DNA of 64,000 nucleotides, from positions 434,001 to 498,000 of the forward strand of contig OZ251222.1 of assembly GCA_965240325.2 (NCBI GenBank). The letters run 5' to 3'. This document shows, in pieces, positions 46,188 through 59,642 of this stretch. The notes beneath the pieces are model-generated. The model saw only the letters and a program-made list of their open reading frames with translations. It made no database searches and had not been told where the DNA came from. Position 1 is the first letter of the stretch. Each line of letters begins with the position of its first letter. Source of the stretch: Rebecca billardiae RCC1528. Lineage: Eukaryota; Protista; Haptophyta. Both the position numbers and the translations under genes were made by a program.

Positions 46188-47894
46188 TCACACAGAAGTG
46201 TGCGGCGGTGGCGGCGAGCCCGCGGCAGACGCGTCCAACGCGCCGCCGTCCCGTGGCCGGCCGCCGCCGCCGAGTGACCCCGAGGGGGCCGATGCGCCGG
46301 CGGCGGCCGTCGAAGCCGAGCCGTTAACGCTCGTCGACGTCGCCGTGGGCGACGCGGCCGCTGGCGGCTTTGTGGGCCGCGGTGGCGTCGAGGGCGTGGC
46401 GTCGAGCGGCGCCGGCTCAGCGCGCTCGAGGTCCACATCGCGCTCCGGCCGCTGGTGACCCGCCGCGGCCCATGGCGGCCGCGCGAGGCCGGCAACGCAC
46501 CGGAAGAGCCCCGAGGTGGCGAGCCATCGGCTGAGCGCTAGCGTGGGCGTCGGCCGCGCGAGCGCGCGCGATGCGCCCTGCGCGCTCGCCGCACGATCGG
46601 AGAGCGGCTGTATGCTCTTGCCGCGCTGCAGCGCCCACTGCCGGATCGCCTCGTCGCTCTCGCGCTGCGTCGCCGACGGCTGCCCGCCCTCCGACACGCA
46701 GCCGCCCGGACAGCGGCACGTGCCGCCCAGAAAGTCCGGGAGATTCTCCGGGTCGATGACCTCGCGCAGGAAGGCCTTCGTCTCGCTCGGGCTGAAGACG
46801 CGGAGCTTCTCGGCGGTGCGCGGCACGAGGAGGTGGGACATCGCCTGCCAGCACTTGGCGAAGAACCACGGCGCGTTCACGATCCAGATCGCCGCGAGGT
46901 TCTCGAAGGTGACGTGGTCGCCGAGGCTCGAGAGCGCCTTGAGACGCTCGACGCACGCGCTGTTGGTGAACATGCCCATCCGCATGCCCTCCAGGTCGAG
47001 GATGGAGACCATCTTGCTCACGCGCCGGCCGTGCAGCCGGGCCTGCCGCTCGTACTCCAGCCGCGCGTACTCCACCATCTGGAAGTGGTACCACACCACC
47101 GCGTTGATCGGCTCGTCCAGCAGCCGCTGGTGCACCGCCTCGGCGTGCGCGTGCGTGCCAGGCATGATGGCGAGCCCGCGGCCGCTCGCGCGCGGCGGCG
47201 GCGCGGAGGCGCGCACGGAGGCGGGCTTGTGCGCGAGCGGCGCGGTGGCGCCCGCCTTCCACAGCTCGCTCATCGCCGACGGCATGATCCGACCGATCCG
47301 CTCGATGTAGATCGGGTGGCCCCACCGGTCCGTCTTGTGCAGCGAGTGCGGCATCACGCGCCGGATGTGCTCGACAAACGCGCGGTCCATCGGGCTGAGG
47401 AGGAGCTCGTCGACGCCGTGCGCCTTGCGGAACTCGAGGGAGTGCTCGAACGCCTCGAAGGCGGCGGACGCTGGGTGCACCGTGGCGAGCACCTTGTGCG
47501 CAAAGAGCGTCACGTCGGGGCAGTACATGATGCCACTCGGTGGCGTGTCCTGGCTGTGCTGCAAAGCCTCCGCCGCGCGCGGATCCTCGCGAAAGCGACG
47601 CTCGAGCTCGGCGAGCTGGCGCGGGTAGTCGAGCGCCGCCGAGCGCGAGCAGGGGGGCGGCTCGCACATCGGCGAGCCGCATGCGCACGTCGAAGGGTGG
47701 CACGAGCCATCCCAGCCAAACGAGTGGATGAATGACGAGCTGCGCTTCGCGCGCGCGCTCTGCGACGTGAGCGGGGATAGCAGGTCGCTGCTGGACGCGT
47801 CGGCCCGACGGCACGCGCGAACGCCGAGCGCGATCAGTGCGAGCGCGAGCGCCGCACCGCCGCCGCCGACCGCGAGCAGCACCGCGGGGAGCAT
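46188..47894 (-). CDS. SEC14/CRAL-TRIO lipid-transfer protein with N-terminal membrane anchor
   Basis: HKTDRWGHPIYIERIG, ILDLEG, IVNAPWFF..W..L.PRT..K, IDPENLPDFLGGTCRC. ATG 47894 precedes a hydrophobic anchor. Confidence 0.85.
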   Translation of the reverse strand: MLPAVLLAVGGGGAALALALIALGVRACRRADASSSDLLSPLTSQSARAKRSSSFIHSFGWDGSCHPSTCACGSPMCEPPPCSRSAALDYPRQLAELERRFREDPRAAEALQHSQDTPPSGIMYCPDVTLFAHKVLATVHPASAAFEAFEHSLEFRKAHGVDELLLSPMDRAFVEHIRRVMPHSLHKTDRWGHPIYIERIGRIMPSAMSELWKAGATAPLAHKPASVRASAPPPRASGRGLAIMPGTHAHAEAVHQRLLDEPINAVVWYHFQMVEYARLEYERQARLHGRRVSKMVSILDLEGMRMGMFTNSACVERLKALSSLGDHVTFENLAAIWIVNAPWFFAKCWQAMSHLLVPRTAEKLRVFSPSETKAFLREVIDPENLPDFLGGTCRCPGGCVSEGGQPSATQRESDEAIRQWALQRGKSIQPLSDRAASAQGASRALARPTPTLALSRWLATSGLFRCVAGLARPPWAAAGHQRPERDVDLERAEPAPLDATPSTPPRPTKPPAAASPTATSTSVNGSASTAAAGASAPSGSLGGGGRPRDGGALDASAAGSPPPPHTSV

Positions 47895-48072
47895 CACGAC
47901 CCCGACAAGGTGCGATGCGAGCAGCCGCTCGCCTCGGTCGCCAGGAAGCTGCACCGCCTTGGTGCTTTCGATCGTCGTCAGCTCGTCGATATCTTTTACT
48001 GGGCAGCTCGCTGCCGGACTTTCTCCCGCAAGAAAGCCGGACAGACGTCGGGCATCGGCGTCATCAGCCGCG

Positions 48073-48696
48073 ATGAGGCAGGCCGTGGTCGTGCTGGTCG
48101 CCTTCGCCGCGGTGGGTTCGTGCGAGCGTGAATCGGCGACGGGCATCACGTTTGCCGACAAGCGCGCAGGCCTTGCACTCGTTGGCACAGGCGTGCGCAC
48201 CAAGGGTCCGATCAAGGTGTACGCTGCTGGCCTGTATGCGGCGCCGATGGGCTGCAAGATGTCCATGCGCAAGTACAAGGACACGAGCCCGTCGAACGCG
48301 GGGGCTCCCTTCTACAACGACCTGGTGAACGCTGGGTTCGCCAAGGCGATCGTGCTCAAGATGGCCATGGGCATCTCGAAGGAGAAGCTGGTCGGCGCCC
48401 TCTCCGATAGCGTGCGCCCGCGGATGAAGGGCGGCAAGGATGCGCTGCCGCAGTTCGCCGACCTGATCCTGAGCGGCTGCGAGCGTCACGCTGCCGGCGG
48501 CAAGGCGTCGAAGGGTACGGAGCTCGCGTTCGGGCTGCAAGGCTCAGCCATGTCCGTCTCCGTGAATGGCAAGGCCTGCGGCTCCGTGAAGAGCCCTGCG
48601 CTTTGCAAGGCGCTTCTCAGCTGCTACCTCGACGAAAAGGCCGTCTCGCCCTCCCTCAAGCGCAAGTGCGCCGAAGGCGTCGTCGGGCTGCTGTAG
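48073..48696 (+). CDS. Chalcone-isomerase-fold (FAP-like) protein with signal peptide
   Basis: ESATGITF, LVGTGVRTKGPIKVYAAGLY, ALSDSVRPRM, LCKALLSCYLDEKAVSP. Confidence 0.8.
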   Translation: MRQAVVVLVAFAAVGSCERESATGITFADKRAGLALVGTGVRTKGPIKVYAAGLYAAPMGCKMSMRKYKDTSPSNAGAPFYNDLVNAGFAKAIVLKMAMGISKEKLVGALSDSVRPRMKGGKDALPQFADLILSGCERHAAGGKASKGTELAFGLQGSAMSVSVNGKACGSVKSPALCKALLSCYLDEKAVSPSLKRKCAEGVVGLL

Positions 48697-48886
48697 ACGA
48701 TTCAGTTGCTACATCAGTAGGACTTCGTCTCAGAGGGCTCCGGGGCCAGTTGCCATCGTCAGTTCACGCACCGTTCACGCACCGCGGACCGGGGCCCGCC
48801 GGGCCCGCCGGGCGGCCGGGCCCGGCGCCGGGCCCGCGCCCGGTCCGCGCGTCTGGTCCGACCGTCGCCCCAGTGTGCATTCTGGC

Positions 48887-49090
48887 TCACAGCTCCGAGG
48901 GCCGCGTGAGTCTATGCGCCTGTGCGGCAGACTTGTTGTAGTACTGCTCGTACGTACGTAGCAGTGTGACTGCGTCAAGACCGTTCTGCGCTGCCACGCC
49001 ATTGACCAGTGCAGGACCGCCGCAGAACACCACACAGGCGCTGCGGATGTCGACGTGGTCGTCGAGGACGGACTCATACATGGCCGGCAT
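48887..49090 (-). CDS. Possible 67-aa small protein
   Basis: ATG start, GC3-rich codons and ordinary amino-acid composition; no family recognised. Confidence 0.3.
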   Translation of the reverse strand: MPAMYESVLDDHVDIRSACVVFCGGPALVNGVAAQNGLDAVTLLRTYEQYYNKSAAQAHRLTRPSEL

Positions 49091-49216
49091 GTTGGCGCTC
49101 GCGGCGCCACCCGTCGGTGTCGTGCGTCAGCGTCGGCGCCGTCAAATGTTACCAGTCACCGGAGCTGAGGCGAGGCGCTGCCGCCGCAAGTGGCCGGTGA
49201 CGGTGTGTCCATTGGC

Positions 49217-49960
49217 TCACCACCGGGCATGCACGCGCAACTGTGCTGCTGTCGGCGATGGGCCCGAGAAGAACTCGACAAGCAGCGAGTTGAAGAGCTC
49301 CGGGTCCTTGAGGTAGCAAGGGTGTGGCGCATCCTTCATCACGTACATGTGGTGCTCCGGGAAGAACATTTTGTACATGCGAGCGCGTGCAGACTCGGGA
49401 TGATCTCGCTCGCCCCACACGATCAACGCAGGCAGGCCGGCAAGGTTCTGCCTCTTCCGAACGCCCGCCGTCTCGAAGACGGCGGCGACGGGCACGTAGC
49501 CAGCGACGACGTCTGCGTGCTCAGCCACGAACGGCGTGGCAACCGAGCCGCCCATCGACGCCGCCACGACGGCCACTTTCTTGCCGTGCGCGACCCCCGG
49601 GACTGCGAGCTGCACAAAATCGTGCAGGAAGCTCTCCTTGGCTGCGCTTGAGAGCTTCTTGCTGCCGGAGAGATGATCGCCGTAGCCGGGCAGGTCGATG
49701 GCGATGGCTCTGAAGCCCGCCCTGGCCAGGGCCTCCAGGCTGCCGACCTCATTCCAGGTCTCCGCCTTGAAGGCGGCCCCGTGCAGCAAGATGACCGTGC
49801 CGCGCACGGGCGAGCCCGCGGGCGGTGCCGCGGTGAGCGCGTGGACGCGGAGCGTCTCGCGTGAGGCCGAGATGTACACCGTGAAGTGCTCAGACTGCAC
49901 CAGCGCCGCGCATGACGGGATGAGGGCTGCGAGCAGGCCGAGGCACGCGATGGCGCGCAT
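49217..49960 (-). CDS. ABHD14-like alpha/beta hydrolase with signal peptide
   Basis: LLHGAAFKAETW, AIDLPGYG, ASMGG nucleophile, LIVWGERD, APHPCYL. Confidence 0.85.
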   Translation of the reverse strand: MRAIACLGLLAALIPSCAALVQSEHFTVYISASRETLRVHALTAAPPAGSPVRGTVILLHGAAFKAETWNEVGSLEALARAGFRAIAIDLPGYGDHLSGSKKLSSAAKESFLHDFVQLAVPGVAHGKKVAVVAASMGGSVATPFVAEHADVVAGYVPVAAVFETAGVRKRQNLAGLPALIVWGERDHPESARARMYKMFFPEHHMYVMKDAPHPCYLKDPELFNSLLVEFFSGPSPTAAQLRVHARW

Positions 49961-50340
49961 GCCCGCCCGCCGCCTCGCTGGAGAGCTCTGCGCCCGCTTG
50001 TGCCGTCCGGATTGTGGATACCCCCATATACCTTAGCTGAACCAAACGTCATACGTAGCGCCAAAGGACAAACCTGAATGCCCAATACATGCGGGTAGCT
50101 CCGTCGGGGATCGTAGTTGCTTGCTTCGGCGGCGGCTCCCGCATTTGCAAGCAGCAGCGGCGGGTGCTTCACAGCCCGCCCCATCGAGCCGGCGGCTGCC
50201 CTTGCCTAGGGTGCACGCGCGCTGGCCGTCGGCGAGGGCCACCCACAATTTCCTTCGCGGAACAGCCCCAAGCACCCAGCGCGGCGTCCAGTCCGCCCGG
50301 GCCGCCCGCCATTCCGTTCCGAGCGTGGGGTGCGAAGGTA

Positions 50341-53300
50341 ATGCCAGGCGGCCTTTTCACGACCGGCGAGGAGCAGCCTCGCTCGCCAGTCGCAGTGCCC
50401 ATGGACGGGGGGTCGAGCCGCCGCGAGGGCACCGGCTCGCGTCGGAGATCCACCCTCTTCTCGTCCTTCCGGCTCCGCCGCCCGAGCATCCTCGAATCCA
50501 AGCAAGGAGGCAAAGGCGTGCTGCACGGGCACTTTGGGTCGCTCGAGTCGACCAAGTACATGCTGCCCGCGGCGAGCACATGGCTGCCGATCACGTTCCT
50601 CAAGTTCATCGTGCTGTTCAACTTCGCGTTCATCTTCGCCGTCGCGGCGCTCGACATCGTCGGCGACTGGGCCACGGACGCGAAGACCGAGATCCGCACG
50701 GCCGACTGCCGCGACGTGTACGACTCGTTTGAGTCCGCGCAGTGCTCGGGCGTCAACTTCGCCGGCGGGGAGATGGTGTCGCACACGTTCACGGGGCTCT
50801 ACCCGCTGAACCGCTGGCTGCGCGTCAGCCTCGACATGTACACCGTCTCCGCGCGCCTCGTCCCCGAGAACGCGACGCTGACGCTGCACGTGCGCATGTT
50901 TGAGCGCAACAGCGCCGCCGAGGGCTGGTCGCTCGTGTACGCGGCGCCGACGCAGAAGCAGCTGTGGTGCCCGCACCGCGCGCTGACGCACGCGACGCCG
51001 TGCAACCTCTTCAACGTCGCCTTCAAGGAGGGCCTCTCCTCGAGGCAGTACCGCGTCGACGTGCAGCTCGCGCGGCACTCCGTGGTCGAGTCGCGCGCGT
51101 GGGCACGCGGCACGGTGCTCAAGGCCTCGCACGGCCGGCGCTCGCTCGGCGAGATCGACATGGCGATGCGCACGATCGGCGCGGTGGTCGCGCTGCTCGC
51201 GCTCTTCGGCTTCCTCTACTCCATGTGGAGCTTCCCCTCCCACCTCTGGCTGCCGCAGCAGCGCATGGTCCTCGTGTACCTCGGCCTCCTCTTTCTGTAC
51301 AACGACCCGACGATCGCGATTTCGCACCTGGCGGGCGGGCGCAACTACTTCTACCAGATGGTGCTCGCGGCGCTGTTCGTGGCGGGCGGCGCGGTGCTCG
51401 CGCTCGTGCTGCTCGACGTGCGCTCGACCGAGCACGACGGCATCGGCGCGGCGGACGACCGCACGCGCCCCGAGCTCACGCACGCCATGCGCGCGGGCAG
51501 CTCGCTCGGCGGCAGCGACAAGCTCGCGCCGACGCGCGAGAGCCGCGCGCTGCCCGCGGCGGCGGGCGCGGCCGAGCAGGAGAGCCCGCTCGAGGAGCTG
51601 AGCCAGTCGGCGTTCGAGCGGCTCAGCGGCAGCCCGATCTCAAGCCACGCCTTCTGGCTGCCCAAGCTCGCGCTCGCCGCCGCGCTCTTCGTCATCACCG
51701 TCACGCTCGACTCGCACCTGTACGCGGTGATGCAGCAGGACCCGGGCGTCACCTACTCGTCGCTGCCGAGCTACCGCGCCTACTTTGGGCTCGAGGCGGC
51801 GGTGTCGTTCACGTGGCTCGGGTACGCGGTGTACCTCGGGCTGGTCGGCGTGGGGCAGGCGTCGAAGGAGTACCACCGGCTGCGCCACGACGCGGAGCGC
51901 GGCGTGCTCGACCTCACGTTCACCAACGTTGCGCACGTGATGGCCTCCAAGGCGTACCTGGCGACCGCGACCGCTCTCGTGATGGTGATCCTCGCGATCC
52001 ACCTGCGCGAGGGCGTGCGCACGCGCGCGTCGGACCACCCGACGTACTCGGACTCGGCGTTCCGCACGGCCCTGCAGAACGTGGTCGTCGCGAACGTCCT
52101 CGGCATCGGCCTCGCCGTCTGCTTCCAGCCGTCGGCGACGACCAAGCAGATTCGGAACGCGGGCGGCCTGCAAGCGTCGCTCGAACACGGGCTAGGCGGG
52201 CTGGACGAGCTCACGTCGGCGCTGCACTCGTACTCGCAGCACCTGAAGAAGCGCGTGGGCAAGTCGCTGCACAACATCCACGGCGCCAAGCCGGGCGCCG
52301 AGCAGCACGCCGCGGCCGTGGACGGCGCGTCCGACGCTGGCGGCGCGCGCTGCGACAGCTCGCGCAGCGCCAGCCGCGGCGGCGCCGGCTCGTCGAGCGC
52401 GCGCGCGGGCACGATCGCGAGCCAGCTCGGCGAGGCGCGCACGGAGGAGGACGGCGTGAAGCTGCTCGCCAAGCTGCTGAAGGAATACGCGGCCGACATG
52501 AAGCTCGCGTGGGAGAAGGGTGGCGACGAGAACCTCGCCGAGGAGCGCGTCGAGGAGCTGCGGATGCGCCAGACTGCGCTCGAGCGGCTGCCGCACATTG
52601 CGCGACACGTCGCGCACATCAAGTGGCGCTACCCCGTGCTGTACACGAGCCGGCAGCGGTACGTGTGGGCGCTGGTCGTGCGCGACGTGGATGACTCGGA
52701 GCACCGCGAGTACTGGGCGCGCGTGCTCGGCACCGGCCTCATCCCCGCCGTGCGCCAGTCCGCGCTCGGCGCGAGCGTGGGCGCGCCTGTCGCCGCGCTG
52801 TGCGCGCACCTCGAGAGCCTCGGCCTCACGCCCGTGCGCAAGCCGGTGCGCCTCGCGGCGAACTCGCCGCACGTGCTGATCCTGCTCGGCGCGACGGAGG
52901 CGGTGCGTGAGGAGCACCTCCGGTACCACCGCTGGCGCTGCTCGGTGGAGCTCGAGCTGCCCACCACGCCGCCCGAGCCGATCACGGCGGCGGACAAGCT
53001 GATGGCGATCGCTCGGCTCCTCGGTGACAACCCCGTGAGCACCGAGCAGTCACACGCCGGGCTCAGGCCGGGGATGATGTCGCTCAAGGTGGGCGGCTTC
53101 GAGCTCGTGGCGGACTCGTTCCCGCTGCACGACCGCGCGCTCAACGCCACGCTGCACACCGAGCTCCGCCGGCTATACGTGCTGAACGACGAGCAGCTGA
53201 CCGTGTTGCGCAACCACTACGGCGAGGAGGTCGGTTTCTACTACGCGGTCCTCAACTTCACGTGCACGTGGCTCACGCCGATGGCGGGGCTCGGCGTGCT

Positions 53301-55394
53301 TTTCGGGCTGCTGCGGTACTCGGACGCGCGCGAGCTGTACGAGTCGTTCTACATCGCGTTCGCCTCGATCTCCGTGCTCTGGGGCGCGCTCGTGTACGTC
53401 TTCTGGCGGCGGCACGCCAACTCGCTCGCGCTGCAGTGGGGCGTGTCCGAGCTGCACGAGAAGGAAAGCCCCAACCCGGCGTTCGTCGGGCGCGTGGTGG
53501 ACGACCACGTGTACGGCGGGGTGCGGCGCGACGTGTCCGGCTGGACGCGCTGGCCCGCGTACCTGCACACGCTGTGGCACATGCTCATCCAGGTGCTCGT
53601 GCTGATCGTCCTCGAGTACTGCGTGTACGCGCACTGGGTCTGGCTCAACGAGAGCCTCGACAACCCGCAGACCTCGATCTACTACTACTACTTCCACTCG
53701 AGCTTCGTCAACTCGCTGCTGTACATCGTGCTCATCATGTACGGGCAGTACGTCGTGTGGTCGTATGTCGCGCACTGGTGCACGGGCAAGGAGAACTGGG
53801 CCTACATGTGCGCGCCCTGCCGACGCCGCGCGCGCGGCGCGCGGCGCGCGGACCGGCCGTGACAGCCGCCTGCGGCTGGCGCGGCGCACGGCGCGCGCGC
53901 ACACGGCGCGCTCGCTGACGTCTCGTGCGCGGCTCACGCCCCCGCCCCACGCGGTCCGCCCCGTCGCCCCCGCCGCCGCCCGCCCCGTCCGCTCCCGCCT
54001 GCTCCCGTCGCGTGCCGCTGCGCTCCGCAGGCGGCAGTTCAGCCGCAACTACGTCTCGTATGTCTTCCTATTCATCTGGCTCGATGGGTACATGTGGTCG
54101 CTGATCATCGGGCTGGTGCACATCCCGACGGTGGAGTGGTACCAGAGCAACGACGGCGACCTGACCGAGGTCAACTTCCCCATCTTCGGCCGCCTCTTCA
54201 AGTCGAACGACCACGACGCTGACTACTGGATGGTGCGCGGCGCGCGCGCGCGCGCGCGCACCGCGGCGGCCGCGGCCGCGGCCGCTCGGCGAGGCGGCGA
54301 GGCGGCGGCGGCGGCGGCGCGGACGGCGCGCGCGCGCGCTGGACGCTCACTCGCGCTCACGCGTCGCCGCGCGTGCGCGCGCCGCCGCGCGCGCGCGCCG
54401 CGCGCAGCAAAAGCACACGGACACGATCATCCTGATGCTCTCGACCAACCAGATCGCCGGCCTCTTTGCTGAGAACGTCTTCCCCGTCCTCTTTGTCTAC
54501 TTTGTGCACCGCACGCTCAGGAAGCAGCGGCGGTACGAGGCGGACGAGCGCGCGGCCGGGCGCGGCACGGCGGACAACATGTTCGACCCGGCGGGCGGCG
54601 GCTCGCGCTCCGAGCTGGACAAGCTCGTGCAGCAGGCCAAGGAGGAGTGGTGGCTGTGGGAGTACTCGACGCAGGACGACTACTACGACGTGGTGCTCTT
54701 CATCGGGTACATCGCCACGTACACGGTGATCTGGCCGGTCACGCCGCTCATGTCGTGGGTGAACAACCACATCGAGCTGCGCACGGACCTGATCAAGATC
54801 AACCGCGCGTGGCGGCGGAAGGTGCCGATGCGCGTCCCGGGCATCGGCGCGTGGGAGCAGGCCCTCGGCATCTCCGTCCTCCTGTCGATTGTCCTCGTCG
54901 TCGCGTTTGGCACCATCTCGACACGCACCGCCGAGACCTTCTTCCGGACTTTCGAGAATCCGGCGCACCCGCAGCACGAGACGTTCTGGAACCCGAAGAC
55001 GGGGCACGTGTGGATCGCGTACCGCTTCGTCGTGCTCTTCGCGTGGGAGCACGTGCTCGGCGTGCTCGTCTTCGCCATCATCTTCTTCATCCCGCCGTGG
55101 ACGACGCGGCTGCGCGCGCACAAGTACCTGCAGCAGAAGGACCGGCTGCAGAGCGAGGCGCGCCACGACGAAGGCGCGCCCGCCGCGGATCGCACGCCGA
55201 GAGCCAAGGGCTCGGGCGGCAACCCGGGCCAGAGCGGCTCGGGCGGCGTGACGACCTCGGCCTGCCACTCAGCGAGCGCCGGCTCGACCCGAAATCGCAA
55301 GGCGGGCTCGGCCGACCCAAAGGCGGCGGGTGCGGCGGCCGCAACGGCGAGCGTGGACACCGGCGGGAGATTTGGATTTCGCCAGTATTTTTGA
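50341..55394 (+). CDS. TMEM181/Wntless-like domain fused to anoctamin (TMEM16), 3 exons, ~1551 aa
   Basis: Exons 50341-53807, 54031-54232, 54408-55394. TMEM181 motifs WLPQQR..LLFLYNDP, FWLPK, QQDP. Anoctamin motifs FPLHD, LRNHYGEEVGFYY, KENW, DDYYDV..GY, NNHIELRTD, GIGAW, WEH. Confidence 0.85.
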
Positions 55395-55647: not shown

Positions 55648-57750
55648 TTACTGCTGCTGCTGCTTATTATTCTGCTGCGCCATATCGTGATCGTCATCAG
55701 CAGTAGTCGTCGCAGACTCGCAGCAGCAGTGGTAGTACAGAAAGCGATGCACGGGCTTCGCTTCGAGAGCGCACGCCACCTCAGTCTCGGTGCGACCACA
55801 GATCGGCAGTGGGCTTGCTGCGAGCCAACCGGGGCCGACAGCGGGCTTCCCCCCTTGCGCGGCGTACCGAAGCTGGCGCAGGGGCATCGTCGGCGTGACG
55901 CCCGTCGCTCCCGCCGATCGCGCGTCCGGGCCCGCACCCTGCGGAATCTCCTCCTGCACCAGCGCGCGCATGGTGCACGACCGCCACTCTCGGCCGCGGA
56001 GCAGCTCGTCCACGCCCTCGCGCATCGCCACGGCCACGTCCTCCGCGTTGGTGCTCACGTACAAGAAGCCGCCCGCGCCGCGCTGCTCGATCGCGTGCAG
56101 CGCAAGCCTGAGCAGCTCGCGGTTGGCCATGAACCCCTCGCGCCCAGGCAGCTGCTGGTTGCCAGGCGCTCGTCCGAGCACGTCGGCCTCGTCCCGAGTC
56201 GCCCCGGCCGCAGGGCCAACGGAGTCGGCAGGGCCGTCCCCGCTCGCCCTAAAGGGTGTGGGGAATTGGATCAGCACAGCGAGCGCGCCCTCGGGCGCGT
56301 GAGGAGGGCGCGCGCGCGAGGCCCAGCGCAGCGCGTCCTCGGCTGTCGCCGTGGCAAACGCCGCCCGCCCGCTGAGCCCGAGCCGCGTCGCCATGCCCGC
56401 CGCGTACCGGACGGCCGCGTGCCGCAGGTCGCAACCGACGAACCGGCCGTGCTCGTGGCGGAGCAGGTGGGCCACTGCCGGGTGCAGCGGAGGCTGCGGC
56501 TCGATCAGCTCGACGCGCCGCGCGCCGCCGGCTGCGTGCGCTGCCAGCCCAAGGATCGATGCGCCGTACCCGCAGCCCACGTCAATGACCAGCGGCGCGG
56601 CGCGGTGCGCCGTCGGGTTCGGGAGCAGGGGCGGCTGCAGCTGCAGCGCCGCGAGTGCCTCTGTGTCCGAGTCTGCTCCGGCTTGCCTCGGCGCGCTCCC
56701 GCGAGAGGCGTCCGCCACCTCCGCGGGTGTGAGCTTCCGCTGCCGTGCGGCGTGGCGCCAGAGCCAGAGCAGCGGGCGCGCGTCGAAGATGGTCAGCGTG
56801 CCGCGCGCGCACAGCGCCTGCCGCGAGGACAGCCCGAGCGCAGGCTCCGTCTCCACCGGCCGCACAGCGCCGCCACCGCCCGCAGCCCCGATGCGATCTG
56901 CAGATGCGGCCTCGCCCGCCTCACCCGCCTCGCCCGCGCTGCGCTGCTGCTCAGCAGCATGCGCCCGCTCGGCGCGCACGCGCGCGGCGGCCGTGGCGAA
57001 GACCGGATGACGCGGATCGACGCCCGCGGCGGCGCAGCGCTCGACCATCGGCAGCACGTCGACAACGCGCCGCGCCCGCCGCACCTCCTCGAGCAGCCTA
57101 TCCGCCAACGCGCCGTATGGCGCAGCGGCGCGCACGCCCGCGAGTGCAAAGTTGAGTGCGGCGTCAGCGGCCTTGCGCCCGTGCATCTCCGGGCCGCCGG
57201 TGGAGGCGAGGCGCGCGAGGGCCGCGTCGAGCAGCGCGTCGATCGCTGCTTCGGCGCGCACGGCGTCCGGTCCGGGCGCCGCGACCTCAGCTCCGAGCAG
57301 TGCAGCGGCCTGAGCAAGCTGTGCGACTGATGTCGCCGCCAGCGACGTTGCCGCACGCGCACGCGCGTCCGTGCGCTCCGGGCTGCTGGCGAGCATGGCG
57401 TCGCGCGCGACGTCACAAAGCCCTCGCTTGGGAGCGGGCGACATCGAGCCACCGCGCGGGTGCCCACTTTCGGCGCGCCGCCATTCGCTCGGGCCATCCC
57501 GAGTGTCGATCACGTCGACGTCAAACGCGCGGAGCGCATCGCGGAGCGCGTCCGCCGAGTCGAAGTGGCCCGCGAGCCGTTCCGCCTGACGGTGTCGGAG
57601 GAGCGCCGCGATGGCGACGCAGCTATTCTCACGCTTGCACGCGGATAAGGGCTTCACGTAGGGCAAAGTCGGCACACTTGGCACAGCGCGGCCACACGCT
57701 GCGCATGTGAGTGTTGCCCATGGGACCAGCGCAGAGATCAGTGGCAGCAT
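55648..57750 (-). CDS. SAM-dependent methyltransferase (TrmB-like) with CysRS anticodon-binding-like N-terminal domain
   Basis: RQAERLAGHFDSADALRDAL..VIDTRDG..WR; VIDVGCGYG; VGCDL; LIQFPTPF; GGFLYVSTN; RTETE. Hydrophobic N-terminal targeting peptide. Confidence 0.7.
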   Translation of the reverse strand: MLPLISALVPWATLTCAACGRAVPSVPTLPYVKPLSACKRENSCVAIAALLRHRQAERLAGHFDSADALRDALRAFDVDVIDTRDGPSEWRRAESGHPRGGSMSPAPKRGLCDVARDAMLASSPERTDARARAATSLAATSVAQLAQAAALLGAEVAAPGPDAVRAEAAIDALLDAALARLASTGGPEMHGRKAADAALNFALAGVRAAAPYGALADRLLEEVRRARRVVDVLPMVERCAAAGVDPRHPVFATAAARVRAERAHAAEQQRSAGEAGEAGEAASADRIGAAGGGGAVRPVETEPALGLSSRQALCARGTLTIFDARPLLWLWRHAARQRKLTPAEVADASRGSAPRQAGADSDTEALAALQLQPPLLPNPTAHRAAPLVIDVGCGYGASILGLAAHAAGGARRVELIEPQPPLHPAVAHLLRHEHGRFVGCDLRHAAVRYAAGMATRLGLSGRAAFATATAEDALRWASRARPPHAPEGALAVLIQFPTPFRASGDGPADSVGPAAGATRDEADVLGRAPGNQQLPGREGFMANRELLRLALHAIEQRGAGGFLYVSTNAEDVAVAMREGVDELLRGREWRSCTMRALVQEEIPQGAGPDARSAGATGVTPTMPLRQLRYAAQGGKPAVGPGWLAASPLPICGRTETEVACALEAKPVHRFLYYHCCCESATTTADDDHDMAQQNNKQQQQ

Positions 57751-58083: not shown

Positions 58084-58714
58084 CAGGGGGGTCCAGATGA
58101 AGTTGGGGAGTTTTGAAGGGAAGCCATGGCGGGCGTGAATGGCCGTCCCACCGCGATCCAAGGCGCGAGTGCAACGTCCGGGACAGGGGGGCGTTGCACT
58201 CGCCGGTCGGCGTCGCCGTACGAGCGCGCGTGCGTGAGTGACAGCTTCCCTTCCGACTTTTCGACCACTCTCACGTCCACGTCCACGTCATCGTGTGACC
58301 GGCGCGCGCGAGACTGCGCATGGGAAGGATGGGCAAGTAGTGGGCAGGATCACCCTTCTGATGGCTGTGTTGACCTCTGGGGCATGCCAGGCGAGGGTGC
58401 AGACCTATCAATGTTCTGCCTGACCCCACAAGTCGTGAGTCTGACGATCAATGTTGGCTACGCGGTAGTCGTGCGACCGCCGTCCGACACGGCTGCCATG
58501 CGATTACGCGTGGCGTGTGCGCGCCTGTCAACGGCGGGGTGATCAACGACCGGCATGGCTAGCAAGCTGGTCAGTGATAGCAGCAGCCTTCTCTGGGACC
58601 ACGCCGCGCGATTTGGCGACCTCGCCACGGCTCAATGCCCGTCCAGAGGCACGGACGTGCCGCACTACCTGGCCAGCCACCATCGAAGTACCCGCCACCA
58701 TCTGGACCCCCCTG
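58084..58714. mobile_element. Tc1/mariner-type non-autonomous element (MITE)
   Basis: TA|CAGGGGGGTCCAGATG ... CATCTGGACCCCCCTG|TA: perfect 16-bp TIRs and TA TSD. Confidence 0.85.
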
Positions 58715-58790
58715 TAGCTACGGCCGCTACCGACGCCGACACATCCTCGCGGGGTCGGCTGGGCGACGGAGGGTCCCGTCATCCGCGCCG

Positions 58791-59642
58791 ATGGCAACGA
58801 CGACGCGTTCACGCTACAGCAAAGAGCGCTTCAGGGGTTACGTGGGGGACGACTGCTGCTGTCCGATCTGTCTCGACGTTCTCGACACACCGGTGTGCTC
58901 GGCCAAATGCGATGAGCACCCTGCGTGCCAGGTGTGCTTCCGAGCCTGGCTGGAGCGTCGGGGCGCGGATGCCGCGTGCCCCGTTTGCCGCACGCCAATG
59001 TCATCCCAAGACGACCTCAAGCCAGCGTCGCGCTTCCTCCGCTTGCAGCTGTCGCAGCTCCAGATCCGCTGCGAGCACGAGGGCTGCGAGTGTTTCGTTC
59101 CGCTGGATGGCCTCGACGCGCACCTGCAGACGTGCGCCTTCAAGCCAATGCATGGTGGCTCCGTTGGCGCCCTGCACGCTGAGATCGCCGAGCTCAAGGG
59201 CCAGGTGCACACCCTTGCCACTGCCCTTGACAGCGTGCTGAGAGCTGTGGTGCCTACCAAGCAGTATTCACGTGGAGAGGACATCACAACCTGGGAGATG
59301 CGATTTCACGAAGGCACCAAAGTGCCATCTGGCTTGCTTCATGACGAGGACGGCCGCGGCCGCGATGGCCAGCGGCTGCCCGAACCCCGCACCCCTCCGT
59401 TCGATGCGTACCATGACGAAGTCGATGCTCTTGTCCGTGAGCAAATGGTGCGCAATGCTGAACGGATGGCTCGAGGCGAGCGGGTCGACGTGGAGTTCAA
59501 CGACTGCATTCCGGATTCGGAGCAACCTATGGCACTGCGTAGGGAGGCAGTGAGGAAGGCAAAAGCAAAGATGTGCGTGAGGAAGTTGGCCGAGGTCAAA
59601 GGTCAAGTGCGCGAGGTCAAGAACGCGACCGCCACTCAGTGA
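58791..59642 (+). CDS. RING-HC plus TRAF/SIAH-type zinc finger and coiled coil (NRDP1/TRAF-like N-terminus)
   Basis: CPICLDVLDTPV..C.EHPACQVC..WL..CPVCR; LQIRCEHEGC..LDAHLQTC; heptad LHAEIAELKGQV. Confidence 0.8.
   Translation: MATTTRSRYSKERFRGYVGDDCCCPICLDVLDTPVCSAKCDEHPACQVCFRAWLERRGADAACPVCRTPMSSQDDLKPASRFLRLQLSQLQIRCEHEGCECFVPLDGLDAHLQTCAFKPMHGGSVGALHAEIAELKGQVHTLATALDSVLRAVVPTKQYSRGEDITTWEMRFHEGTKVPSGLLHDEDGRGRDGQRLPEPRTPPFDAYHDEVDALVREQMVRNAERMARGERVDVEFNDCIPDSEQPMALRREAVRKAKAKMCVRKLAEVKGQVREVKNATATQ

Follow-up and report, generated by a model that had tools for sequence, protein, structure and literature searches.

The gene described here lies on the forward strand at positions 50341 to 55394 of a stretch of 64,000 nucleotides (nt) of the haptophyte Rebecca billardiae RCC1528 (contig OZ251222.1, positions 434,001 to 498,000), referred to below as the window, and all coordinates are those of this stretch. 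Two known families of membrane proteins are found in it in a conserved combination, not previously described: a Wntless-like unit at the N-terminus and an anoctamin, or TMEM16 protein, at the C-terminus. That the locus is one gene, encoding one membrane protein of 1551 amino acids (aa) and about 18 helices in which two complete known modules are joined, we regard as practically certain. The gene model comprises three exons:

50341..53807, forward strand: exon 1, aa 1-1155 plus 2 nt of codon 1156
53808..54030, forward strand: intron 1, 223 nt, GT..AG, splitting codon 1156
54031..54232, forward strand: exon 2, last base of codon 1156 and then aa 1157-1223, in the middle of the anoctamin transmembrane (TM) domain
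54233..54407, forward strand: intron 2, 175 nt, GT..AG, lying between codons
54408..55394, forward strand: exon 3, aa 1224-1551 plus the stop codon, the remainder of the anoctamin

Exon 1 covers the Wntless-like unit in full and the linker, and goes on through the cytosolic N-terminal domain of the anoctamin to about halfway along its transmembrane domain. The evidence on which each assignment rests, including AlphaFold2 (AF2) models and comparison with Wntless (WLS), is given with the feature:

50539..51135, forward strand: first TM helix and luminal beta-sandwich (GOLD-like), aa 67-265; AF2 model, invariant cysteines, WLS alignment
51136..52140, forward strand: seven-helix bundle (PF06664), aa 266-600; Pfam match in two stretches, AF2 helices
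51421..51630, forward strand: disordered, poorly conserved loop between bundle helices 3 and 4, aa 361-430; predicted to be cytosolic
52141..52650, forward strand: linker, the true junction, aa 601-770; free of stop codons
52651..53205, forward strand: cytosolic N-terminal domain of the anoctamin, aa 771-955; phmmer alignment to nhTMEM16, model of the related protein P0155
53206..53807, forward strand: first part of the anoctamin transmembrane domain, aa 956-1155; PF04547, profile positions 2-193 of 460

The genome has a GC content of about 70%, and at such values long open reading frames (ORFs) occurring by chance are common: ORFs of 425 and 576 codons are indeed present in other frames of this locus. 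It could therefore be argued that neighbouring genes share an open frame by chance, or that an assembly error or a pseudogene mimics a fusion. The ORF of the fusion gene (50089-53862, forward strand), however, extends for 1267 codons from stop to stop, 1257 of them from the first ATG, while in 300 shuffles of the same bases the longest open run was on average 187 codons and at most 530. The other five frames of 50341-53807 contain 4 to 37 stops. In the coding frame, the GC content at third codon positions (GC3) is 0.92-1.00 in all 150-nt bins from 50539 to 53807, with no dip across the junction (0.92-0.98 within 52141-52650), and falls outside the gene, to 0.66-0.72 over the 250 nt that precede 50341 and to about 0.7 beyond 55394. 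Because of the shuffle maxima, of the stops in the other frames and of the unbroken GC3, the whole stretch is coding in one frame. The same junction, with conserved blocks, recurs in independent assemblies from other samples, and we consider the chance that the fusion is an artefact to be negligible. The sequence-only reading, made before any database search, had already maintained that the junction is free of introns within exon 1 and not a product of gene merging; the single frame and steady GC3 bear it out. As a side observation, GC3 is 0.95-1.00 in coding regions, so that its phase marks out exons very sharply in this genome.

The ATG at 50341 is likely the start codon, and matches the N-terminus of P0001, a full-length orthologue found in another sample. 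Both introns begin with the donor GTGCGC (at 53808 and 54233) and end with an AG acceptor (54029-30 and 54406-07), and the spliced coding sequence, 4656 nt long, translates into 1551 aa without internal stops. P0001 aligns with this protein from end to end (48% identity over 1538 columns), and both splice junctions are free of gaps in the alignments to P0001, P0155 and P0154, all of which are uninterrupted ORFs. Because of this gap-free alignment to intron-free orthologues, the three-exon model is confirmed at the level of sequence comparison. In R. billardiae, the gene is probably transcribed as a single transcript. The start, the end, the three exons and a first exon of about 1155 codons had all been proposed beforehand, and ORF, splice sites and orthologue alignment agree on each. 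Both introns consist mostly of low-complexity sequence rich in GCG and CGC, open in other frames. Base composition, GC3 close to 1.0 and introns that are short and rich in GC are in keeping with a GC-rich alga.

The N-terminal unit (aa 67-600) is a complete member of the Wntless-like family (PF06664), and thereby of the GOST superfamily. Its score with the Pfam profile PF06664 (WLS-like_TM; cut-off 28.3 bits) is 49.1 bits, the disordered loop dividing the match into two parts, which cover positions 7-79 and 106-246 of the 247 in the profile; the related proteins P0001 (38.9 bits), P0007 (45.9 bits, profile positions 8-247) and P0154 (29.1 bits) also exceed the cut-off. Identity among full-length proteins is 0.42-0.56 in the bundle, as opposed to 0.10-0.28 in the disordered loop. 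Four cysteines of the beta-sandwich, C123, C135, C210 and C221, are invariant in all full-length relatives, and an N-x-T/S sequon in the same domain is kept in three of the four full-length proteins: the conserved cysteines and the mostly kept N-glycosylation sequon fit a beta-sandwich predicted to be luminal and disulfide-bonded.

An AF2 model of the unit, built with seven orthologous sequences as input, features one helix (residues 23-46 in model numbering), a beta-sandwich (strands within 56-205) and then seven long helices. Its predicted local distance difference test score (pLDDT) is 64, falling below 50 at residues 301-373, and its predicted template modelling score (pTM) is 0.63. Foldseek places four human Wntless entries on top (E 2.5e-14 to 1.5e-11), followed by TMEM87A. 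VIA-align superimposes the model on WLS with a Z of 22.1 and a root-mean-square deviation of 4.0, aligning 419 of 480 residues over chain residues 3-498; generic bundles of G-protein-coupled receptors (GPCRs) and rhodopsins reach a Z of about 15 over some 250 residues, 5-7 Z units below WLS. Among the shapes of the ESM Atlas, two TMEM181 clusters come closest (template modelling score, TM score, 0.64-0.65 by query and 0.67-0.74 by target, with about 430 residues aligned), the next one being a Wntless cluster (0.56/0.71). A search by language-model features likewise returned the TMEM181 and Wntless families as nearest, with the TMEM181 clusters at 0.93.

At the level of single sequences, phmmer of the unit against PDB sequences gave no match; when a profile of seven N-terminal units was used, Wntless was the sole family matched in the PDB, weakly (E 0.45, in the GOLD region) and not significantly by itself. 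The TMEM181_GOLD profile PF21885 gave no match in the unit, and the WLS_GOLD profile PF21883 reached E 0.098 and 12.7 bits, below its cut-off of 27.9. Since neither GOLD-domain profile attains its threshold, the unit does not appear, by sequence, to be assignable as orthologue of TMEM181 or of WLS specifically. Of the earlier proposal that the first 600 residues or so are TMEM181/Wntless-like, the family has thus been upheld, both by PF06664 and by the WLS/TMEM181 fold, and orthology to TMEM181 has not.

The C-terminal half (aa 771-1460), followed from about aa 1461 by a low-complexity tail, is a complete TMEM16/anoctamin, judging from its sequence, with an intact predicted Ca2+ site. The Pfam profile PF04547 (Anoctamin; cut-off 28 bits) matches exon 1 with 88.7 bits (aa 957-1153, profile positions 2-193 of 460) and exon 3 with 99.5 bits (profile positions 263-454 of 460), and in the full orthologue P0001 it extends over profile positions 2-451 of 460 with 228.8 bits. 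Exon 3 takes in the helices of the Ca2+ site (TM6-TM8 by TMEM16 numbering) and all that follows of the Pfam domain, and encodes the five predicted ligands:

54471-54473, forward strand: predicted Ca2+ ligand E1245, exon 3
54678-54680, forward strand: predicted Ca2+ ligand D1314, exon 3
54687-54689, forward strand: predicted Ca2+ ligand D1317, exon 3
54774-54776, forward strand: predicted Ca2+ ligand E1346, exon 3
54786-54788, forward strand: predicted Ca2+ ligand D1350, exon 3

In the phmmer alignment of the orthologue, these five acidic residues line up with the acids of TM6, TM7 and TM8 of afTMEM16, and none of them varies among the four full-length proteins. The ligand motifs recur in most related loci, the pattern search having missed TM6 in the loci L002 and L007 and TM7 in L005. 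The equivalent positions of nhTMEM16 (E452, D503, E506, E535 and D539) reportedly bind Ca2+, a finding attributed to Brunner et al. 2014. An anoctamin with retained Ca2+-site acids is what the sequence-only reading had described, and PF04547, the afTMEM16 alignment and the invariance among full-length proteins speak for it; the short motifs by which it had recognized both halves (WLPQQR, LYNDP, FWLPK and DP in the first; AENVFP, DDYYD and NNHIELRTD in the second) all occur in the protein and are shared by its orthologues.

The anoctamin fold was evaluated on residues 742-1520 of P0155, about 60% identical to the R. billardiae protein in this region. The AF2 model has pLDDT 89 and pTM 0.90, with a mixed alpha/beta N-domain at high pLDDT, and conforms to the TMEM16 fold, in which a cytosolic N-domain is combined with a membrane domain of ten helices. 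By Foldseek, its best matches are afTMEM16 (E 2.8e-23), nhTMEM16 and TMEM16K (E about 1e-23 to 1e-21, TM score by target 0.75-0.82), while TMEM16F and TMEM16A rank behind them. Sequence comparison of P0001 with PDB entries by phmmer singles out the same three proteins, afTMEM16 (1e-27), ANO10/TMEM16K (2.2e-27) and nhTMEM16 (8e-26, with the alignment starting at chain residue 36), the matches to TMEM16F and TMEM16A being confined to the surroundings of TM7-8. Profile search with PF06664 and PF04547 and structure prediction had been suggested as checks of the sequence-only reading: both profiles are above cut-off, and the predicted folds are those of WLS for the N-terminal unit (Z 22.1, as above) and of TMEM16 for the anoctamin part of the orthologue.

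With afTMEM16, nhTMEM16 and TMEM16K as its closest relatives of known function, the anoctamin half is probably a Ca2+-activated phospholipid scramblase, possibly with an ion leak. By analogy with TMEM16 proteins it would form a homodimer, so that each complex would carry two Wntless-like units. A different function would result if the anoctamin were mainly an ion channel, and the Wntless-like unit a sensor for luminal or extracellular ligands that gates or modulates it. The Pfam label of the PF04547 family is Ca2+-activated chloride channel, TMEM16 scramblases conduct ions too, and the N-terminal unit does feature a GPCR-like bundle under a domain of ligand-binding type. Nonetheless, the nearest proteins, both by sequence and by fold, are the three scramblases, the TMEM16A channel scoring far lower, and the GOST protein TMEM87A is judged, in the GOST family paper, unlikely to be a channel or a GPCR (PMC9711517). 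We therefore hold a receptor-channel to be clearly improbable, and prefer the assignment as scramblase.

Three parts can be distinguished in the linker. Block A (aa 601-645), which follows the last helix of the bundle, is conserved, being 34-54% identical among the four full-length proteins, and so is the helical block B (aa 701-770, 39-51% identity). The 55 residues between them (aa 646-700) are rich in Ala, Ser and Gly and variable in both length and sequence (16-29% identity), the segment being longer in P0155. In the P0155 model, block B forms three helices (pLDDT 79-96) ahead of the anoctamin N-domain. Since the N-terminal unit has eight helices with the beta-sandwich luminal, according to the order of elements in the AF2 model and to the known topologies of WLS and TMEM16, its C-terminus is predicted to be cytosolic: this matches the side required for the anoctamin N-domain, and the topology of the whole protein would be coherent.

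The linker also bears on the main rival to a joint function of the two modules, namely that the Wntless-like unit is a sorting or retention module only, which routes the scramblase through Golgi-endosome-surface recycling in the way of WLS. WLS is a trafficking protein (PMC9711517), and the low-complexity, variable stretch of aa 646-700 would fit a flexible tether better than a rigid assembly, leaving room for such a role. Sorting signals, however, are usually short cytosolic motifs, whereas here the GOLD-like domain and the bundle are as conserved as the cytosolic domain of the anoctamin (0.38-0.56), with four invariant cysteines, which is more than a sorting tag needs. A mere sorting function seems to us unlikely, if deserving of serious consideration, and a joint function of the two modules is preferred.

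Relatives were searched for by exhaustive phmmer over 1.84 billion representatives, plus a cluster look-up and a word search. Close relatives are few, eight at E up to 1e-30, and full fusions are found among them. The related proteins and their loci are the following:

P0001, 1605 aa: L001, JGI sample 3300016802; one ORF on a 5.4-kb contig
P0155, 1621 aa: L008, JGI sample 3300016954; one ORF on a 5.5-kb contig
P0154, 1521 aa: L006, Logan SRR12366011; one ORF, adjoining two other genes
P0007, 1088 aa: L002, JGI sample 3300038657; both Pfam families in one ORF, with more anoctamin exons downstream
P0003, 975 aa: L003 and L004; colinear genomic copy
P0008 and P0002, 308 and 949 aa: L005; colinear genomic copy

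Single-ORF fusions, each containing both Pfam families, are thus present in three other organisms (P0001, P0155 and P0154; 1521-1621 aa, 45-51% identical), and a colinear gene split by introns is present in three further ones (L002, L003/L004 and L005). When the 1551-aa protein was used as tblastn query, all relatives proved to be colinear and on a single strand. The contigs L001 and L008 are shaped like full-length mRNAs, with about 200 nt, one ORF and then about 400 nt, and belong to an accession series which we take to be re-assemblies of MMETSP transcriptomes in IMG. In L005, the N-terminal unit is broken by a brief insertion without homology (L005:1947-2103), which contains a stop in frame and is presumably a small intron ending in ...cag; intron positions would thus differ between lineages, L006, L001 and L008 being free of introns. 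NCBI and UniRef are not among the sources of the related fusion proteins found.

Among relatives, identity in the N-terminal unit (0.38-0.56) is comparable to that in the anoctamin (0.44-0.68). A quick maximum-likelihood tree of the N-terminal part of the anoctamin (40 rows, LG+G4), rooted by other anoctamins only, groups the seven fusions shown and three fragments in one clade, with a Shimodaira-Hasegawa-like approximate likelihood ratio (SH-aLRT) support of 99. This clade splits into a type-A branch (96), which includes the R. billardiae gene, and a type-B pair formed by P0007 and P0006 (100); none of the anoctamins inside it is known to be free-standing. Found in at least seven organisms and on both paralogous branches, the fusion is of old date and subject to purifying selection; the tree suggests one old fusion, followed by duplication.

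P0006 (L007:1-360, contig Ga0186151_100687) is a type-B anoctamin of 866 aa, found in the same sample as P0001, which begins at linker block B. It was considered as a free-standing anoctamin that might date the fusion, and rejected, its start being immediately preceded by a run of N; no stop interrupts the frame between this run and the start, and P0006 is probably a cut-off fusion rather than a free anoctamin.

The same protein enters the argument that the locus yields two products, either from an internal promoter or start or by proteolysis within the linker, the fusion being then a precursor or a device for co-expression. Met codons do occur within block B (aa 701-770), where P0006 happens to begin, and the variable segment of the linker looks disordered. 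The blocks on either side of this segment are nevertheless conserved, frame and GC3 run unbroken, and the fusion has outlasted a duplication and persists in seven organisms; as to P0006, besides being probably cut off, its sister P0007 is fused. Separate products are accordingly, in our opinion, very improbable, and we retain the single fused protein.

Other searches were less productive. The word-index protein search, run with the first 500 residues and with the alignment of the N-terminal unit, gave no match even though P0003 exists, so that its blank result does not amount to absence: low-complexity words of Ala, Gly and Arg, typical of GC-rich genes, probably crowd out the true matches. 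Scans of metagenome contigs with patterns of the N-terminal unit and of the junction gave no confirmed locus, and the ESM Atlas feature search with the whole fusion protein no usable cluster. No match was found in NCBIfam, as expected for a eukaryotic protein.

The fusion gene is flanked in the window by the following ORFs:

46188-48284, reverse strand: CRAL/TRIO (Sec14-like lipid-transfer) protein, Pfam, 70.8 bits
47728-48696, forward strand: chalcone-isomerase-like protein, Pfam
49217-49960, reverse strand: alpha/beta hydrolase, oriented divergently from the fusion gene at a distance of about 380 bp
55648-57750, reverse strand: ORF of 700 aa with weak matches only (CysS_C 3e-4, methyltransferase 1.5e-3), GC3 about 0.8
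58635-59642, forward strand: ORF with a RING finger (zf-C3HC4), Pfam

The three upstream neighbours (46188-49960) feature lipid-related Pfam domains, the chalcone-isomerase-like family including fatty-acid-binding proteins. Their presence could be a coincidence or could mark a neighbourhood of genes for lipid handling.

In the solved GOST proteins, TMEM87A and WLS, the bundle encloses a cavity with an opening towards the lumen and another, a slot flanked by H5 and H6, towards the luminal or outer leaflet; in both proteins a phospholipid is bound in this slot, and the family has been proposed to carry lipidated or membrane-embedded cargo, a proposal still untested (PMC9711517). On these grounds we suggest the hypothesis that the fusion couples cargo trafficking to lipid scrambling. 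In a membrane of the secretory pathway or of endosomes, the tethered scramblase would set the supply or composition of lipids in the luminal leaflet beside the GOST slot, and scrambling triggered by Ca2+ would be coupled to the loading, holding or release of a cargo. The latter might be a lipid or a lipid-anchored luminal molecule, held by the GOLD domain and the cavity.

Several points weigh against this interpretation. The variable segment of the linker could let the two modules act independently, or be cleaved apart. The confidence of the AF2 model of the N-terminal unit is moderate (pLDDT 64), and the models cover this unit and the anoctamin half each by itself. Scramblase and channel activity cannot be told apart by sequence. 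Finally, Wnt, to our knowledge the sole known cargo of the Wntless family, is restricted to animals, and there would be no Wnt to carry in this case. Taken as a whole, the statement of both architecture and coupling mechanism appears to us evenly poised between right and wrong.

A conserved natural fusion is direct evolutionary evidence that both activities are useful at the same place and at the same time, and may be read more broadly, as a "Rosetta stone": Wntless/TMEM181-type GOST proteins would work with TMEM16 scramblases in eukaryotes generally, scrambling supplying or removing the lipids of the slot while lipid-linked cargo is loaded or released. We regard this extension as an improbable one. 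If it were true, TMEM181 or WLS would be functional partners, in animals, of an intracellular anoctamin such as TMEM16K, and the role of TMEM181 would come down to control of lipid leaflets. In any case, the fusion provides a testable clue to the function of the obscure TMEM181 family. For the TMEM16 field it is a rare scramblase carrying a second complete polytopic module, and a structure of the dimer, with its 36 or so helices, could show how lipid-binding slot and scrambling groove are arranged with respect to each other.

The sequence-only reading knew of no described example, and the literature agrees: full-text searches for a TMEM181-anoctamin or TMEM16-Wntless fusion returned no description, only papers listing the genes separately, although an unremarked database entry containing both domains may exist. 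No papers with TMEM181 in the title were found, and this protein is called minimally characterised in the GOST family paper (PMC9711517).

Compared with known systems, the N-terminal unit resembles human Wntless (WLS/GPR177; PDB 8TZS, 7KC4 and 7DRT) over the whole chain, with a TM helix, a luminal beta-sandwich of GOLD type and a seven-helix bundle, and has PF06664 in common with it. In contrast, identity is only about 10-11%, the bundle of the fusion protein contains a long disordered cytosolic loop, and its C-terminus runs on into a second membrane protein. TMEM181 is an animal GOST protein of obscure function, linked to sensitivity to the cytolethal distending toxin (CDT) of E. coli. It shares the PF06664 family with the fusion protein and provides the nearest shapes in the ESM Atlas; it differs in being a stand-alone protein, without an anoctamin, and its GOLD profile finds no match in the N-terminal unit.

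As to the second half, both the cytosolic N-domain and the transmembrane domain align with afTMEM16 and nhTMEM16, at about 18-20% identity. The first acidic ligand of TM7 is Asp in the fusion protein and in afTMEM16 alike, while the second is Asp in the former and Glu in the latter. The three helices of block B, ahead of the N-domain, are an addition of the fusion protein, and a second membrane module is missing from the fungal proteins. Human TMEM16K (anoctamin-10) is an equal-best match by sequence (2.2e-27) and close by fold (E about 1e-21): being a scramblase of intracellular membranes, namely of the endoplasmic reticulum, it is a plausible functional analogue of the anoctamin half, although its 660-aa chain stands alone and includes no GOST partner. 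Yeast Ist2, weakly matched by sequence (2.7e-5), offers a precedent for a TMEM16 protein with a functional appendage: in Ist2 this is a cytosolic tether, whereas in the fusion protein it is a complete second polytopic membrane protein.

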